NCBI GenBank assembly: GCA_038496445.1
Contig: JALMLS010000455.1
Coordinates: forward strand, 248,001 to 312,000
Source: Trichosphaerium sp. ATCC 40318
Lineage: Eukaryota; Protista; Tubulinea
Direction of reading: 5' to 3'
DNA: 64,000 nt
Part shown: positions 29,768 to 47,189 of the stretch, in pieces
How the letters are laid out: every line of letters begins with the position of its first letter
How positions within the stretch are numbered: position 1 is the stretch's first letter
The notes under the pieces: generated by a model
What the model was told of the DNA's origin: nothing
The model's input: only the letters and a program-made list of their open reading frames with translations
Database searches by the model: none
Position numbers and translations under genes: made by a program

Positions 29768-31701
29768 TCATGAAGTCATCTTCACAGCTAAATGCGGCAG
29801 CAAGTTGCTACCAGTATCGAAAAGACACGGAAGAGACAAGGCTTTTTTTGTTTTACAAATCTTTATTTTTTGCTGCTAGCTCCTCTGAAAATTTAACAGC
29901 ACGTTCTGGGTTCTCATATACAATACTTTTTGAATGTTTTGTACTTGATATTGTTCTCATCTTAGACTTACTTTTCTTTATCTTTGATGGTTCACTACCC
30001 GAATGCTTACGACTACGCTTAAAAGACCTCTTTTTATCAAGTGCTTTACCTACTTTTGGAATCATTGCAGAAACACTCTTCGACTCCAAACCGCCCTTAA
30101 AAAAGTCAACAAGAAAAAACTAAACATACAGAAGCTCGTAGGTGGTACACAGAGTATGCCCTTTTTTTTTCCGTAAAAATATTGATACTGGACATTTTCT
30201 TTCAATAAAACATGATTACTTTTTAAGCAACAGAAGTTCATGAAACAGAAAAAATGAGAAAAAAAGATTTGAAGTTTGGTTTTTTTTTTGGTTTGTTAAA
30301 CAAATCACGTACGTGAAGATGAGGTAATACCCATCCAAAGTGTTTCAGTAAAGCATCAATATGAGGTATTGTCTTACCAAGCTTTGGTATCAAAACATCC
30401 AAGTGTTTAATAAACTGATCCATAAAAGGTAAAAGTCTATCAATATGAGGAAGCAATGCTCCCAAATGTGGTGCCAGCGCGTCCATATGAGGACATAAGT
30501 CATCTAAATAAGGTACTAATCCCTCAACATGTTCGTTATTCTTTGTATAAGGAAGAATAGCATCAGCATGCTTAAGCAAAACTGGCAAGTGAGGTAATAA
30601 TGCTTCTTTGTGAAATAAAATAATATCCAAGTTTCCGACAACTGTTTCAACATTTCTTTTTGATAAAAGTACATCAAGACTTGGTCTTATAGTAGGTAAT
30701 AAAGGCATAATATCATCAAGGTGCGGAGCGATTCTTGGAAAGTGTTCAGTGATAACAGGAATGTTATCATTAAGTGCGTCTAAGTTAAGTGATATTGCAT
30801 CCAAATGGTCTAAGACATGATCGAAATAAGGTGCTATATTATCGAAATTTATAAATATCTGATCAGCGTGTTTGAAAATATCATGAAAGTGAGGTTCTAG
30901 TTTATCAATATTTCGACTAAGAAAAATATAAGAAAAATGACTAAAGGGCTTATTTGTTCGAATTCTACCATTGAAAGTGGGCTAAAAGGATTGACACTGC
31001 AGCAATATAAAAATGTTTCATCAAGTATGTAAATAAATTGAATAATGTGTATCACATAGTGAATACTATTTTGTACGTAGGTTTTTAATGTTTTCAGAAA
31101 AGCTGTCAAACCACTTTTTTGGCTCCCTTGTTTATACGTACACTATTAAATCAAAGTGAGGTAACAGAGAACGTTTGTGCTCTTTGATAGTATGAAGATA
31201 AGGAAGAACTGTATCCAAGTGTTTCATAATTATATCCAGATTTGGAACAAAAACAAACTTGTTTGTTAGAATAAAGTCTAAATGAGGTGAAAGCTTATCA
31301 ATGTTTTCGAAAATTTTAGGAAAGTGAGGCACTAAATCATCAAGAACTTCCAATATTGAGAAGATATGTGGGTACAATGTCGGTGAATTTTGTAAGATAT
31401 ATCCTCTGTACTCCCACAACTTATATTTTTGTCTGTAAACTGAAAAAATAGTATGACGCAACATTGAAGAAGGATTCTAAACAAAAATGTCAATGTTACT
31501 AAATTATGTGCCAATGAAAAAAAAGAAAAACGCCTTGAGCATATGCAATGAACCGTATACGTGATAAAAATAGTATTCACAGCACTTTTTAAAAAATAGG
31601 AGCACAGTAAAGTGGTTTTTCTGGAACAACTTTTTTCATCAATGTACCCTTTCAACAGGTGGAGGCTTCGTGTTTTGGTATTGATATTCATATTCCGCCA
31701 T
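29768..31701 (-). CDS. Hypothetical protein with many (L/I)xPH(L/F)DxL repeats and a Lys/Ser-rich tail
   Basis: Spliced MAEYEYQYQNTKPPPVER|NPSSMLRHTIF..., then ORFs 31132-31464 and 30238-30804 (repeated PHLD/PYLD/PHID/KHLD units), and basic tail ORF 29853-30089. Confidence 0.65.
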
Positions 31702-32332: not shown

Positions 32333-32584
32333 TTACGTTAAAGTATGCCCGAAATGGCAAAACACCTACGCCTTTACCTGTCTCCGCTCGCTATAGCTAA
32401 TTATCCTTAAATAGACCAGCTTTGAATAAGTCAGAGCAAGTATTGAACTAAGTTGTAAGTTGTAAAACGTATTTCTTTGGAATAAACCTGTGAGACACTA
32501 AGAGTAGCTACAAATGCGGCGAATTCTTATTAATACGCGTATGAGACCACTACTGTGTCTTTATTTTAATGTACTGGTTATTAG

Positions 32585-35517
32585 ATGAAATCTGTTGCTA
32601 GATTCACCGCTAAATACAATAAAAGACAAGGTAATAGCGTTACTGATACATTTCACGCGTTAATTACACTTTTGATTGAAACTTGTTTACACATACAATA
32701 GCGGAAAAACTCCCGCCGTATTCAGACTTTTATGACAGCGACAAACTGTTTTTTGACCAATACGCCCAAACAGTTAAGCTCAAAACGCTATGCGATTGGT
32801 ATTCTGTTTCTCTCCTTTCTATATGCGAACGTGGTGGGCGTAGTGTAATATCTAGGTATTATCCGCCACAACTCCACAAATTTCTGCCTCTGACTTCTGA
32901 TATACTCCTAGATACCGAAATAGCGTACTCATGGCTCTGGAGACTAATTATCCTGAATATGAATGGGATTGGCAGCGTTTTGGGTTAGTGACAGCAGTTT
33001 GTTCGAAACTAATGTAGATCTATAAGCCGATTGCCTCGAGGGTTTTGGGACGATAAGGAGTCACACGTGGATGAAGTGGATGGTATAGGTGAACTACTTG
33101 GTGTTAAGGTACTAGATGATTGGTACGATATAAACACACGTGCCATACTTACTTCACGACCTGCTGCACATAACTTGCTTCAACTGTACGAAATGAGTTG
33201 CAAAAAACACGTTTGTTTTGACTTCACTCTAGGTACAACAAGTCTATCCCTTCGCTTCTTGAAGCAATATACCCTCACCATAGTTGGGATTTGGTTCGCT
33301 TTAGGTAAAATATAGCACAAAGAGAGTATTTTAAATCAGATTGTTCTTGACAGAGTTTAGAGCGACACCACGTGATATTTGGAGAAGTAAAGCTAGTAGA
33401 CGACGTAAACTAGACTCAGCTGCTGAAAAACTTGACATCAAAACTGCTTGTGATTGGTACAATGTAAAATACGTACAATTACAGAAACTTGGGGTTGGCG
33501 GAGTGTTATCAAAGTAAGACCAAAATGCCAACATCCTAATTTCTTATTTTTTTCTTACTTATTACGTAGTTATGCTGGTGTTATGTATGCTCTTGAAGAT
33601 CTTTTTCCAGAGTATAAGTGGGAGCGAAGGCGATACTTGTACGATAAAGTTGTGTTAAAACAATGTGTTTGATTAGTACTTACCTGATTTCTTTCAAAAA
33701 ACAGGCCTCCAGTTGCATCAGCAGATCAGAGCGTTTATGTAGATAAGTTTAATGACCTGGGGCTAAAACTATGTATAAAGAATTTGGATCAATGGTATGA
33801 CTTGCTTCCGCATCAGTTGAAAATTGTAACTGCCGATGATTTGATAACAAGGTATGATCAATTCATTCAGTGTAGTAGTTTTTTGATTATAGAGTTGTAG
33901 CGCAAATTCTGTATCAAAAGGATTACTCTATGCATTCCCAGATCATAAATGGACAGTATCAAAATTCACGTACGTGTTTTTAGTGCTGTATATTGAAAAA
34001 TAAGTCAAAAGGACATAAATTAGAACGTGCACTAAAGTAATTCCAAAGGACTTATCAAAAAGTTATATTGTTTTTTTTCAGTAAGTTTTTAAGCATGTGT
34101 AGCTCTGGACCATATGACTATTGGATTGAAAATCAACGATATCGTTTAGAATCTATGGCTCCCTTACTGGATATCAAAATTATTGACGATTGGCAGTATG
34201 TTTCAGTAACTAGGCTACGCCAAGTTGGCTTAAATGATATTCTTGCAAGGTAGTGTTTCTTTAACTCGCAATTAACTGAACTTCTTACTTTTAAGGTATG
34301 GCACACCCAAGAAAATGTTAAAATCAATATACTACGAGTTTGAATGGAGATTTACGTATACACCATTTGGACACTGGTCAAAACCAAAGAACCAAGTATC
34401 TTTCTTGACAAAATTAGCCAATCGATTTAATATTCAATCTCCAGAACATTGGTACTTTTTATATACTTTCAAAAAAACAAAGTCTACAGAGTACTTTGAC
34501 AAGAAAAAAAATAACATCTAGATACTCTTATAACGTGATTTGTTATCAAAACTGGAGTGAAAGCTCGATCATCAAAAAAAAATGTGGCAACTTTTAAAGT
34601 GTCATTTCTTTCACTTGTTTTCTTACTTATTTCTTCTTTTTTTTTAATCCTCATGCGTTTAGGTATCGGTTATCAGATGACGACATAATAAGTACAGCAG
34701 GCGGGCCAGGTTTCTTGCAATATTATCCAAAAAGCCTTAAAATATTCAATCCAAGTGTAAAATGGGATTGGAACCTATTTTTTGGGTATCGTAAAAAGTC
34801 AAAGCAACGGTACGTCTGTCTTCTTTCGTTAATTTAAACGTTTTGACTACAGAGATTTACTAACCCGGAAAAATAGGCTTCTGTTTACTAGCTTACAAAA
34901 GCTTTTTCCTTCTAGTCAAATTGTTGAAGAACATTTGATAAGTACAAGTGGTGTGCGGTTGAGTCTTGATGTATACATTGCGGAGTATAATTTAGCACTA
35001 GAATACCAAGGTACGTAACCTGTGAAGGATATATTATGCAACAAAAAAGTTACTGTTGCTCTCTTAGATTCTTGTTTTAACTTGCATTTAACTTGTTTAT
35101 TTTCAGGTGAACAACATTATCATGATGCTATATTCCCTCACAGTCCGCCTACTATAAAAAATGAGGCACTTGATAATCTAAAACTGCAACAGTGTGAAAA
35201 CGCCGGTACGAAAAAAAATCCGTTTCAACTTTTTTTTTCTTCTTTTATTCTTACTAATGTTACTTAAGGTATATCCCTTGTTCGAATACCTTACTGGTAC
35301 GTTAGATGAAATCACTTTACACCTTTTGATGAAACAAACATATTCTTCTAGGTGGCCTGGTGATTTGGATAGCTTGATGGCAACCATTTTGTACATAAAG
35401 CCTGATATAAAGTTTGATAGACCGTGTACATCTTTACCACTTGGCAATATTCCCATCACAGATACAAGTAAGAAATTATATAGTTACTATTCAAATGATA
35501 GTGTATTTAGGAAGTAA
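32585..35517 (+). CDS. Tandem ~70-aa 'DWY' repeat protein (6 repeats) with C-terminal PD-(D/E)xK / DUF559-Vsr-like nuclease domain, paralog 1
   Basis: Phase-consistent splicing gives six units with consensus P..(F/Y)W....(Q)R..LD.L...L.IK.L.DWY.V....L...G...LL..Y......L...YP.Y.W...F. These are followed by SKQRLLFTSLQKLFP...SLDVYIAEYNLALEYQG|EQHY...DNLKLQQCENAG|ISLVRIPYW|WPGDLDSLMATI. Confidence 0.85.
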
Positions 35518-35653
35518 CACTGTTGCTCTTATGATGCCTAATCCGACAATGGCATAGACGCAAGAAAACATTCCAAAAAGAATTTGAAAAATATAATGGT
35601 TTACTTAATTAAGTTTTTGAGCTAACACTCAGACGTTATCCAAAAAAAAGAAT

Positions 35654-36675
35654 CTAATGAGGAGTCTTTGGTCCACGGATTTGTCCAGATCCAGCAACAT
35701 CAAGTTTAGGAGCATCTATTTAAAACATGTAAATAGTCTCTTCGATACAAGTTCAAATAAGTTGAAAAAAAAACTTACTCATTGCTTGTTGAAAAGCAAT
35801 ACCACCAATATCATGGGAAGCACCAGTTTGACTTTCACCTATTACATGCCTTGTTAGTTTTGGCCAGATAGAAGAGAAACGTGTTCATCAGTACCTCTAA
35901 TTTGGCCGGAACCTGCTACTTCTAACTTTGGTGCGTCTGTATTCTTATTAGTCGTCTACTATCACAAATCTTGATTTTTTCAAAATCACGTACTCATAGC
36001 TTGTTTAAATGCCATTCCGCCAATACCATGTGAATGAGGAGCAGCACCAGACGTCTCAGTGTTGATTACACCAATACGGGGTGATTCTACAATTTCTGTT
36101 AATTACAGCCCAAGGGCAGTTTGTAGAACGCACTCATGACAACTTTATGGTGGTATGAATCAAGTCCATGGGAGTTTGCGCCACCAGCACGTAATTGCTC
36201 ATTGACAACTCCTAGTTTTGGTGCATCTTCATAGTTGTTTAGCTTAAGACGTTTAAAGGCGTAGTTGTCATACTTGTAGCGTTTTTAATGCTTGCATCTT
36301 CGGCGGTTCTCTTTCCAACTGCGCGTACGGAGTTTGATGTACCAGTCATAGGGTTATGATGTTTACAGTATACACCTCCCTATAAAGAAGTTAGTACTCA
36401 GCTAGTCAAAGTCGCAAATATAGAAAATACTCGCACAACTCGCGTTCCGGATGCTAGTATACGTACCTCATAATAGTAGTAGGTCCTCAAGGTTAGTTGC
36501 CAACCACATCCTGGGTTTTGACCTTGTGTGCATGTTAATAGAGCGTATTTGTCCAAAATAACGCACATTTGAAGCAACCTTTGTGGTATACTTGCTCTTT
36601 ACCAGGTGGACCGCATCTAACACCTTCTAATTGGTACACAGACTTCCCACATTTATTACACTTTCCAAGACGCAT
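35654..36675 (-). CDS. LimE-like LIM-domain protein with four A(M/T)NAPKL repeats
   Basis: LIM: MRLGKCNKCGKSVYQLEG...YHKGCFKC|QNPGCGWQLTLRTYYYYE|GGVYCKHH. Then KNATNAPKL, VVMKSPRI, QAMNAPKL, QAMNAPKL, which resemble the ALNAPK repeats of Dictyostelium LimE as I recall them. Confidence 0.85.
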
Positions 36676-44614: not shown

Positions 44615-47189
44615 ATGAGGAATAAACTAGCAGCTAATCTAGGTACCAAATAAGCTATCTACGACATTTTTTAATACTTCCCATAAGTGTCAGCTGGGCC
44701 AGCGAGCAAAATCCAAATAGCAACAGATAGTCAAAAAAGTATGTACCGCTGTACTATTGAAAATATTTCAAAAGAGCTGTCTATACCTGATTTAAGCGGT
44801 TGGTACAATATTAGTACGAATGAACTAAAGGAGAAGAAAATAGCGTTCTTCACGTGCGTGTGCAACATACTTTTTTCGAAAACACGTGATTTTTGACACT
44901 AAAATAAAAACATCGTTCGAACAAAGCTAAAAGTATAAGGTTAGTAGCAGATACAGTGGATCCATTTGCGCTACACTGTATGATGTTTACCCTGCTTATG
45001 ATTGGAAACCATGGAAGTTCAGGTAAGTGTTTTGTTTCATTAGGCAGTCAAGCAACACTCAATATTTAATGGGTTTTATCATCTTTCAGACAAGTTCCGC
45101 AAGAGTATTGGCTAGATGTAGCGAATCAAAGACATTTTTTCGATTGTATTGGAGAAGATATGGATGTTAAATCATTAGATGATTGGTATACCAAGAAGCC
45201 AAGCTCAATGAAAAAAATTGGTGCTAACGCAGTTATCCGGTAAGATGGTTCCTTGCCGTCTAGTAATAGCTTACTTATCCTAGTCACCTTCACCGTGGTT
45301 CAGAACATCTATGCTTCCGAACCATCTACCCTAACTACCAGTGGATACCATGGAAGTTTGTGTACGATTATTCGTTGTAAAAAATGTTTCTATTGGACTT
45401 AATGTCTGTAGACATACAAGGCTTGAAGGTTGGGAAGATCCAGTTTTACAAAGGGATTTTATGGAATGTGTTAGCAAGTATCTACGTATAATGGATATCA
45501 CTTCTTGGTATAAGTACTGTACCGACGAATTTCTATTTACTAGTGCCCGTGAAATGTACGTCACATATGTTATTTATCTTTACAAAGTATGACCACATTG
45601 TTGCTTACTTGTCATACTCTACAACTTTTTTTTGACTCCTTGTGATTATTATCTCACTATGTGGTTATAAAAAAAGGACAAAGTGGTTGCCTGGAGAACG
45701 TAATCTCTTAAATTTATTCTTTGTCAAAGGGTTACACAAGAGACAGATGATGAACATTTTCAAAAACACAGACTGTATGGATAGTAATATTCTGGAGGTT
45801 CACCCAAACTAACTAGAGATAAGGGATGACCACGATCCAGAATATCTACTGCGTCACAACATAATGTTCAAAATAGGAAAAAAGATTCTACAGCAGTTAC
45901 GTTTAAAGTTTAAAACTCTTACTTGTTACTATCTTTTTTTAAATGACTTTATTGATTTCTTGTGCCTAGGCATGGTGGACGTATTCAACGAGCACTCAGG
46001 AATATTTATCCTCATTATGAATGGAGGTTTGAGTCTGATGGTACAAGTGGCTACTGGTTATCAACGACAAATCAAAGGAGTTTTCTGCTGCGTTTAAAAA
46101 GACAGTTTAACATTTCAAGCCCAGAAATGTGGTAAGCTTCTTTCTCCCTTGAAAATAGACTAACAAACGTTTCTTTCACTACCATTAGGTACAGAATTTC
46201 AAATGCTGATTTTAGAGCGAATGCTACAAGCGGGATACGGCAGGTTTGGCCTCAAATGTTGACACAACTTGAACCTCATTTTAACTGGGATTGGACAAAG
46301 TTTGCATGGCAAGGAAAGGCGTCAAAACAAAGGTATAGATAGTGATAGTTGGTACAGCAGGCACCAAGTTAAAAGTTTACTTTCATGTCCATAATCCAGA
46401 AATGTTGACAGGTGTCCTTGCTGTACCTTTGTTGGAGTTAATTTTGGCTAAAAAAATGTGCCACAGGCTACTGTATGAAGCTGTTAAAGAGATACTGCCA
46501 AGTATGATTATTCTAGAGGAGCATATAATAGGTGTAAGTGGCTTCAAATTTTAAATTCTTGAAAAAACAGTTTCAACACGTAGACTAAAAAAACCCGTGT
46601 ACTGACACTTGACTGAATTTCTTAGGTTCGTGGACAAACAAACTCTCCTTTGTCGGTAGATGTTTATATCGCTGATTACAATATTGCTCTCGAATACCAG
46701 GGTATAGTTTAAACCGTCTAAAAAGAAATTTACATGTCATTGATAACTAACTGTCAAAAAAGGAGAACAACACTTTCGTGATCGTATTTTTGTTGGACAT
46801 TTTTCGTCTGTTCAACGAATACAAGACACTGAAAAAATGAATATATGCGAAGCAGCAGGTACGTCAAGAACGTAACATAAAAGAAAAAATCAAAGGTTAA
46901 TTTTATGCTTCTTTTTTTAGGCATAACTCTTGTACATGTTCCGTTCTGGTGGAATGGCGATAAAGGACAAATTGCTGCAACCTTACGGCACTTTATGCCA
47001 CACTTGAACCGTTTAATAGTTCCTCAAGGTGCTAAACCTCTCTCGGATCATTTACCATCTGGTGACCGTACGTCAAAGCCACGATCAACAATAGTTTTCA
47101 TAGTTCACTTATTTTATTCTTGTTGAACAGTAAACCTACGAATGATGCAAGTGTCAACTGAGTTCGTCGCAAGAGATATGGCCAGCTAA
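44615..47189 (+). CDS. Tandem 'DWY' repeat protein (4 repeats) with C-terminal PD-(D/E)xK / DUF559-Vsr-like nuclease domain, paralog 2
   Basis: Units LSIPDLSGWYNI...VYPAYDWKPWKF, VPQEYWLDVANQRHFFD...LDDWY...IYPNYQWIPWKF, WEDPVLQRDFME...TSWY...IYPHYEWRF and YWLSTTNQRSFL...PEMW|Y. Then SKQR|LLYEAVKEILP...SVDVYIADYNIALEYQG|EQHF...DTEKMNICEAAG|ITLVHVPFWW. Confidence 0.85.

Follow-up and report, generated by a model that had tools for sequence, protein, structure and literature searches.

Helical repeats joined to a nuclease fold of the Vsr/RAP type are a known design for proteins of organellar gene expression. In the FASTK, Chlamydomonas OPR-RAP and apicomplexan HPR-RAP proteins, which follow this design, the repeats are hairpin solenoids of 34–40 residues per unit (FAST_1/2, OPR, HPR). 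The Vsr, DUF559 and DUF2726 endonucleases, including I-Bth0305I, are small stand-alone or intron-encoded DNA enzymes of bacteria and phages. Here we describe a gene with a comparable layout in a 64,000-nucleotide stretch of the genome of Trichosphaerium sp. ATCC 40318 (assembly GCA_038496445.1, contig JALMLS010000455.1, forward-strand positions 248,001 to 312,000), referred to as the window and numbered from its first letter. The gene encodes six helical repeats followed by a nuclease-like domain, and the repeat has a different fold; we found it in no solved structure and in no paper, and no Pfam model recognizes it robustly. The safest statement about the gene's product is that it would be an array-guided endonuclease, in which DUF4046-like modules form a rigid array that places an intact nuclease of the Vsr/RAP clade. 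The full reading that we favor, with a probability of about 0.42, is that this endonuclease acts on DNA and most likely in an organelle, the mitochondrion. The protein resembles a RAP protein, or a modular homing-type nuclease, in the way it would work, and it is a member of neither group because the Pfam RAP model fails on the family, the repeat is not a hairpin solenoid and the gene is not mobile.

By predicted fold and by motif, the C-terminal domain is a member of the Vsr/DUF559/DUF2726/RAP branch of the PD-(D/E)xK enzymes. We aligned 30 C-domains of the family (alignment A2), which are about 25–30% identical and follow the pattern ELD(V/I)..P.L.LAFEYQGEQHY...RD..K..C...GITLI.VPYWW. The residues D, Y, G, H, D, K, P and W are invariant, and the E (at least 90%) and the second W of PYWW are nearly so. 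The window protein retains every conserved residue, namely D494, E506-Y-Q-G-E-Q-H512, D531, K534 and IPYWW; we take the residues of this domain to be the counterparts of Vsr D51, H69 and D97. That the acidic residues and the histidine are conserved even among very divergent members speaks for an active enzyme. A first-pass annotation, made by a model from the letters of the DNA, had placed the domain in this same branch and had quoted its C-terminal string (LDVYIAEYNLALEYQGEQHY ... LDNLK ... GISLVRIPYWW). The string is present in the spliced protein, where it is distributed over four exons, and the assignment holds up, with the D, E, H, D and K all intact and with support from a homologue model and its fold matches. 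Compared with the Vsr, DUF559 and DUF2726 enzymes, the domain ends in a family-specific (I/V)PYWW, follows a long helical array and is encoded by an intron-rich nuclear gene.

Profile searches place the domain nearest to DUF2726. The Pfam DUF2726 model matches 22 of the 30 C-domains at E≤1, weakly, with a best value of 5.4e-6; one relative, P0019, scores 29.6 bits, above the cutoff of 24.7. The Pfam RAP model (PF08373) matches just one of the 30 (E 0.032). The DUF2726, DUF559 and Vsr models match neither the domain of the closest relative, P0010, nor the single exons of the window gene, for which Pfam scans gave nothing useful, and a sequence-profile search of the PDB with the C-domain returned a chance match alone (GCP4 at E 1). 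In a survey of PD-(D/E)xK proteins, DUF2726 is grouped with Vsr and DUF559, and RAP is also listed in the superfamily (PMC3424549).

The fold was modeled on P0010, which is collinear with the window protein over residues 37–599 at 32% identity. The AlphaFold2 model of its C-domain (P0010:525-690, 38% identical to the window domain by BLASTP) has a mean predicted local distance difference test score (pLDDT) of 80 and a predicted template-modeling score (pTM) of 0.72. Its elements follow the order H-E-E-E-H-H-E-H and contain the alpha-beta-beta-beta-alpha-beta core, so the model adopts the restriction-endonuclease-like fold, a check that the first-pass annotation had proposed. The best PDB matches by Foldseek are mitoribosomal RAP proteins of T. 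gondii, Vsr, I-Bth0305I, PvuRts1I and the R2 endonuclease, and the top matches by Foldseek and VIA all lie within the Vsr/DUF559/DUF2726/RAP branch.

Ahead of this domain are six tandem repeats of 70–77 residues with the framework W..NQR..DWY..GG..LL..Y..S..YP..W..F. Six repeats of about 70 residues with fixed framework residues had been noticed from the sequence, and a family hidden Markov model (HMM) built from 958 repeats of database homologues bears this out: each of the six is significant, with independent E-values (i-Evalues) of 1e-12 to 7e-23. The exon structure follows the repeats. Repeats 1–4 are encoded by one exon pair each, with one phase-2 intron immediately ahead of the conserved Tyr and a second, likewise of phase 2, after the closing W..F. 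Repeat 5 keeps the intron before the Tyr, no intron separates repeats 5 and 6, and in repeat 6 the intron is placed after the Trp of the xWY motif (here EHWY, split between W and Y). Several of the 17 introns thus share position and phase across repeats. The exon-pair layout and the conserved intron phases show that the array grew by duplication of a two-exon unit in a eukaryotic genome.

The family consensus of the repeat is P.GYW....NQR.F.D.L...LGIK..EDWY.V....I...GG..LL..Y..S...AL...YPEH.W..W.F. Judged by column entropies over the 958 repeats, a framework of hydrophobic and Trp residues is conserved, as is a polar N-Q-R where helix 1 begins. Around 15 highly variable positions are distributed among helices 1, 3 and 4, with the variable HMM columns at 8-11, 15, 19, 37-43, 46-47 and 50-51, and no TALE-like pair is evident among them. 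The arrays are mildly basic, with a mean net charge of +1.1 per repeat in the family scan and isoelectric points of 8.4 for the window array and 9.4 for that of P0010. Like TALE, PPR and PUF proteins, the family has uniform tandem repeats, a conserved framework with variable surface positions and a variable repeat number, and it resembles engineered TALE nucleases (TALENs) in its C-terminal nuclease. It is not homologous to them, its unit has double the length, and no hypervariable pair of code residues stands out. The first-pass annotation had proposed, from a layout like that of TALE or PPR nucleases, that a variable repeat array sets the specificity. The array may do so; no TALE/PPR-like code emerges from the repeats, since their variable positions are spread across the unit, and the unit shares no homology with TALE, PPR, OPR or HPR.

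To describe the fold of the repeat, three consecutive repeats of P0010 (residues 94–316) were modeled with an alignment of 70 triple repeats. The model (pLDDT 96.3, pTM 0.82) is all-helical, with approximately five helices per unit of about 73 residues, and the high pTM suggests that the packing between repeats is fixed. This unit appears unrelated to the FAST, OPR, HPR or PPR hairpins. A Foldseek search of the PDB gave nothing significant (best annexin/giardin, E 0.14, template-modeling score (TM) 0.23), the Swiss-Prot models and the BFVD viral models contain no match, and no significant match to PPR, FASTK or OPR structures appeared in the PDB and Swiss-Prot model searches. Matches were found among AlphaFold DB clusters, with TM up to 0.91 at 25–31% identity. 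All are uncharacterized proteins, automatically named 'RAP domain-containing protein (Fragment)', 'DUF4046 domain-containing protein', 'DUF559 domain-containing protein' or 'Restriction endonuclease'. The DUF4046 entries of AlphaFold DB have TM of 0.64–0.72 to the model. In the ESM Atlas, a DUF4046 cluster from Bacillota matches it with TM 0.72/0.64 over 215 residues, and eukaryotic clusters of Discosea and Evosea match as well. When Atlas clusters are compared by language-model features, the nearest ones are eukaryotic, most commonly from Tubulinea, or labeled Nucleocytoviricota; because BFVD and Swiss-Prot hold no match to the repeat, we do not claim its presence in cultured giant viruses.

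Pfam does not recognize the repeat reliably. DUF4046 (PF13255) matches three of the 70 three-repeat segments at E≤1, all below threshold; the modeled segment of P0010 scores 15.3 bits where the Pfam cutoff is 22.8. Matches to Myb_Rap1, SAM_TNK, TagF_N and CH were weak, scattered and inconsistent, and were discarded as noise. DUF4046, a family of Bacillota, has the same predicted fold and geometry, with about 215 residues superposed and sequence matches below the Pfam threshold. On the models, the repeat is a distant structural relative of bacterial DUF4046, the sole named family that shares its fold. The literature that we searched does not mention DUF4046.

The window gene is one instance of a large family and not a unique locus. 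The repeat halves encoded by the first exon of each pair were made into a profile (alignment A1), which was searched against 1.84 billion cluster representatives. The profile matches 3,447 proteins, counted as clusters at 50% identity, at E≤1e-3, 1,344 at E≤1e-10 and 139 at E≤1e-30. The best 153 proteins have 3–25 repeats each, so the array is one of truly variable number; a repeat HMM and a family count had been suggested in the first-pass annotation. The window protein is itself absent from the collections searched and was added to these 153 for a scan of domain architecture. Of these 154 proteins, 80 have the C-terminal nuclease domain, and in every one of them it comes behind the last repeat. 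Repeat-only members also exist, since the intronless relative P0008 (688 residues; L001:2916-4982, a eukaryotic metagenome) has eight repeats without the nuclease domain. An intronless relative on a 78-kb metagenome contig adjoins fragments of actin, Skp1 and RagA genes, neighbors that identify the contig as eukaryotic. Among the sources, those with a name are EukProt transcriptomes, from Cavostelium (Amoebozoa) and Heterolobosea sp. BB2, and one marine-protist transcript of MMETSP; the remainder come from Logan, JGI and ENA assemblies. Homologues, UniProt Q54JM7 among them, also occur in Dictyostelium. Swiss-Prot, the PDB and the papers searched contain no characterized member, in agreement with what had been thought at the start, and neither PADLOC nor NCBIfam has a model for the family. 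A survey of RAP proteins reported no detectable RAP in Amoebozoa or Excavata (PMC8190603), lineages in which the present family is common.

A second, paralogous gene with repeats and a nuclease is found 9 kb downstream, on the same strand (44690-47130, +); tblastn recognized its repeat pieces and nuclease exons. The stretch LSVDVYIADYNIALEYQG is 83% identical, and GITLVHVPFWW is present too. An intron stands immediately before the LSVDVY exon of this copy, a place that is free of introns in the first gene.

Unlike RAP proteins, the family occurs in bacteria also, although rarely, and it spans several protist supergroups. Among the 80 best prokaryotic loci with the nuclease, three (L084, L089 and L109) carry three to six repeats ahead of it. 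The gene at L089:1792-3522, on a contig of a deltaproteobacterial metagenome-assembled genome, is intronless and encodes 577 residues with six very regular, basic repeats and the nuclease; the protein aligns with residues 18–563 of the window protein. Its neighbors are genes for a sigma-54 activator, an M54 peptidase and a Schlafen/AlbA_2 protein. The last of these, the next gene (L089:4233-5873), encodes a Schlafen/AlbA_2-HATPase_c_4 protein with weak PADLOC matches to Argonaute-associated models. The L084 gene sits among TRAP-transporter genes. These neighbors indicate that both contigs are genuinely bacterial.

The nuclease subtype (EYQGxQHY...PYWW) is also encoded on at least 314 viral contigs of IMG/VR. 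There it follows treble-clef zinc ribbons (DUF4379), DUF723 and CapR modules, for example at L006:4645-6231 and L066:4924-6225. These phage and viral proteins have the same subtype at the C-terminus of a modular array, but their arrays are zinc ribbons and not the helical repeat, which was present in none of the 80 best viral loci bearing the subtype.

Three Cavostelium transcripts add a further domain. In P0088 (residues 454-847), P0132 (672-1056) and P0089 (554-854), a LigE-like ATP-dependent DNA ligase domain follows the nuclease. P0088 matches NCBIfam PRK09125 at 9e-32, and in Pfam the ligase scores 36 bits for DNA_ligase_A_M, above threshold, and 22 bits for RNA_ligase, below it. P0088 keeps an intact adenylation motif, KLDG; in P0132 the motif has become QLDG, and in P0089 it has degenerated. 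The ligase is followed by Cys-rich tails, in which Pfam did not confirm a PARP-type zinc finger. The ligase-bearing members suggest a cut-and-reseal chemistry.

The N-termini bear on the compartment. In 56 members an extension of 15–70 residues precedes the first repeat. Compared with the rest of the protein, these extensions have fewer acidic residues (D+E 4.9% versus 12%), more Arg (9.8% versus 4.9%) and more Ser+Thr (18% versus 10.6%), and 25 of the 56 have no acidic and at least three basic residues within the first 20. Many of them read like textbook mitochondrial presequences, and on this composition a mitochondrial location is likely for many members. Presequence-like N-termini, to which the earlier hint of mitochondrial targeting pointed, are common in the family. 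For the window protein a mitochondrial location is weakly indicated by its 15 basic N-terminal residues, MKSVARFTAKYNKRQ, a possible short targeting signal.

Based on these observations, we suggest the following mechanism. Six compact five-helix modules of about 73 residues would form a rigid array, the array would dock on a particular nucleic-acid site, and the C-terminal PD-(D/E)xK domain (D494, E506, H512, D531, K534) would cut or nick beside the docked site. The window protein would be the 'recognise and cut' form, and its ligase-bearing sisters the 'recognise, cut, reseal' form. We favor an array-guided endonuclease because the gene is expressed with an intact frame, most family C-domains match DUF2726 and the catalytic residues are conserved, the nuclease follows the last repeat in all 80 carriers, the arrays are mildly basic and their geometry appears fixed. 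The data establish how the gene is built and that it is expressed, its repeats, the fold class of the two parts, the conserved catalytic residues and the extent of the family; nuclease activity, nucleic-acid binding and specificity of the array, the kind of substrate and the compartment are inferred. DNA is slightly favored over RNA as the substrate, since the domain has sequence affinity to DUF2726/Vsr rather than to RAP, its nuclease relatives occur in phage and viral contigs with zinc-ribbon arrays, full-length homologues exist in bacteria, and the fused ligases are of the DNA type, which makes sense as nick-and-reseal chemistry. An organellar location is favored because the 56 extensions are presequence-like in composition. 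Several observations weigh against this reading. A large nuclear family with variable repeats and presequences is the hallmark of organellar RNA factors (PPR, OPR, HPR, FASTK), not of DNA enzymes. The structural matches of the C-domain to RAP domains, which are RNA-associated, equal in quality those to Vsr and I-Bth0305I. The window protein has no ligase domain, its repeats are rather degenerate (NQR in one of six, GG in two of six), and its own N-terminal signal is merely 15 residues long. The cleavage motif of the mitochondrial processing peptidase, R-x-[FYL]-[SAT], is not enriched in the extensions (10 observed versus 6.6 ± 2.4 expected). Finally, both structural models come from P0010 and not from the window protein itself.

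These points lead to the strongest alternative, an organellar RNA-processing factor analogous to OPR-RAP, HPR-RAP and FASTK proteins, whose array would bind a specific mitochondrial transcript while the RAP-like domain cleaves or caps an RNA end, in junction processing, rRNA fragment binding or transcript stabilization. FASTKD4 offers a precedent, as it requires a conserved RAP aspartate for processing a non-canonical RNA junction (PMC5737537). The presequence-like N-termini, the expansion of the family with its wide range of repeat numbers, the structural matches of the C-domain to RAP proteins, the automatic 'RAP domain-containing protein' names of related Atlas and UniProt clusters, and the abundance of members in lineages whose mitochondrial RNA editing is elaborate, Heterolobosea BB2 for instance, all fit such a factor. 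The domain, however, is recognized far more often by DUF2726 than by RAP profiles, the repeat is a five-helix domain that matched no PPR, OPR or FAST structure, full-length homologues exist in bacteria and sister proteins bear a DNA-type ligase. RAP-type RNA processing, the function suggested in the first-pass annotation, is thus one of two live options; the bacterial homologues, phage relatives and ligase fusions point at least equally to DNA. We consider the RNA factor a substantial possibility, though short of likely.

The protein could also be a nuclease of genome conflict outside the organelles, either part of a diversifying repertoire of sequence-directed DNases against viruses and mobile DNA or the descendant of a mobile homing-type endonuclease. 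The nuclease has many relatives on phage and viral contigs, combined there with modular DNA-binding arrays, the homing endonuclease I-Bth0305I is among the best structural matches, one bacterial homologue adjoins the Schlafen/AlbA_2-HATPase_c_4 gene with its weak PADLOC matches, the paralogues are clustered, with the second copy at a distance of 9 kb, and some Atlas clusters are labeled Nucleocytoviricota. But the 17 introns at repeat-conserved positions mark the gene as a long-standing resident of the host genome, not a mobile element, no family member has a PADLOC match, the BFVD viral structures contain no match, and the presequence-like N-termini argue for mitochondrial import; we regard this account as improbable. 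If the part of it that concerns DNA is added to the favored reading, which is mostly organellar, DNA as the substrate has a little under an even chance. The least probable account is a catalytically silent adaptor, in which the sole task of the array and the nuclease-fold domain would be to bind a partner, be it nucleic acid or protein; such a task has been proposed for some RAP proteins with structural roles in the mitoribosome. The closest solved structures do include such mitoribosomal subunits and a chain of the Polytomella ATP synthase (6rd4_2), and some relatives have ligase domains that are clearly inactive (K to Q in P0132, degenerate in P0089). Against this, the acidic, His and Lys residues of the motif are invariant, the E nearly so, in very divergent members and are kept here, which is hard to explain without catalysis.

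The array-guided endonuclease is of interest beyond this locus. If the array reads sequence modularly, it would be a new programmable binding scaffold and a route into mitochondrial DNA or RNA processing of amoebozoans and heteroloboseans. A further step is to regard the repeat as a new modular class of nucleic-acid reader with a decipherable residue-to-base code, and the family as natural, nuclear-encoded recognize-cut(-religate) enzymes that act on the mitochondrial genome or transcriptome of amoebae at numerous defined sites. We think this unlikely; if true, the family would be a natural counterpart of TALENs and one missing component of the machinery behind the unusual mitochondrial gene expression in these lineages. 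Even without a code, the family is well defined, abundant and, with homologues in Dictyostelium, experimentally tractable.

The gene is spliced and expressed, and its features are collected in Table 1. No single or long open reading frame (ORF) spans the gene region in any frame, and the protein arises only via splicing. The coding pieces occupy all three frames with short AT-rich stretches between them, as expected of an intron-rich eukaryotic gene. Public cDNA contigs from three runs were placed on positions 32400-35700: X2 and X3 gave one contig of about 1.9 kb each, and X1 gave two short contigs. Their joints define 16 introns inside the coding sequence (CDS) and one in the 5' untranslated region (UTR), all GT..AG and 43–211 nucleotides long. 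A SMART template-switch adapter on one contig at 32479 marks the 5' end of a transcript. The start codon is ATG 32585, as annotated before, and the stop is TAG 35555-35557. The gene had previously been ended at 35517, which is the stop of an intron-retained frame; the last intron, 35468-35510, was missed, and because it is removed in X1, X2 and X3 the CDS ends at the later stop.

Table 1. Coordinates of the repeat-nuclease gene in the window.
Feature	Position	Strand	Residues	Evidence or remark
5' UTR exon	32479..32538	+		cDNA loose end 32479; joint 32538 to 32585 in X2/X3
Coding region, 17 exons	32585..35557	+	604 residues	cDNA joints; open frame 1815 nt
CDS exons 1-6	32585-32630, 32702-32855, 32912-32983, 33027-33185, 33233-33304, 33361-33513	+		
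CDS exons 7-12	33570-33638, 33705-33851, 33901-33969, 34103-34249, 34296-34451, 34663-34809	+		
CDS exons 13-17	34877-35010, 35107-35205, 35269-35296, 35352-35467, 35511-35557	+		
N-terminal 15 residues MKSVARFTAKYNKRQ	32585..32630	+		read from sequence; basic, no acidic residue
Repeat 1	32719..32978	+	22-89	HMM i-Evalue 1.1e-20; N-terminal part degenerate
Repeat 2	33028..33299	+	92-166	HMM i-Evalue 7.2e-23
Repeat 3	33362..33633	+	169-240	HMM i-Evalue 1.3e-22; second exon has alternative donors 33638/33648
Repeat 4	33634..33964	+	241-312	HMM i-Evalue 1.5e-12; most divergent, without first Trp
Repeat 5	34104..34359	+	315-384	HMM i-Evalue 9.8e-18
Repeat 6	34360..34777	+	385-453	HMM i-Evalue 7.9e-19
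PD-(D/E)xK nuclease-like domain	34778..35442	+	454-581	alignment A2, AlphaFold2 model of homologue, fold matches
Motif LDVYI	34965-34979	+		
Motif EYQGEQH	35001-35117	+		intron-split
Motif LDNLK	35169-35183	+		
Motif IPYWW	35286-35355	+		
C-terminal tail and TAG stop	35443..35557	+		poorly conserved; tail has low pLDDT in homologue model

The exon that starts at 33570 is spliced in two ways. The X3 contig joins donor 33638 to 33705, giving an exon of 69 nucleotides that stays in frame. The X2 contig joins donor 33648, 10 nucleotides further on, to the same acceptor; this exon of 79 nucleotides shifts the frame and leads to a stop after 258 residues. The X2 form would yield a product of three repeats without the nuclease, and the productive mRNA encodes 604 residues. 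Readings of the locus as a mobile element or a pseudogene were rejected, as the gene is spliced and open with intact catalytic residues. It is a nuclear-type gene with 17 spliceosomal introns, not an endonuclease gene inside an intron, intein or mobile element or a free-standing phage gene. The 46-nucleotide intron of the 5' UTR (32539-32584) ends exactly at the start codon, and an upstream ATG at 32514 opens a short upstream ORF of 13 codons that overlaps the main ATG. On the minus strand, ORFs at 30238-31464 contain a periodic Pro/His/Leu motif of approximately 11 residues (…LVPYLDDLCPHMDALAPHLGALLPHIDRLLPFMDQFIKHLDVLIPKLGKTIPHIDALLKHF…).

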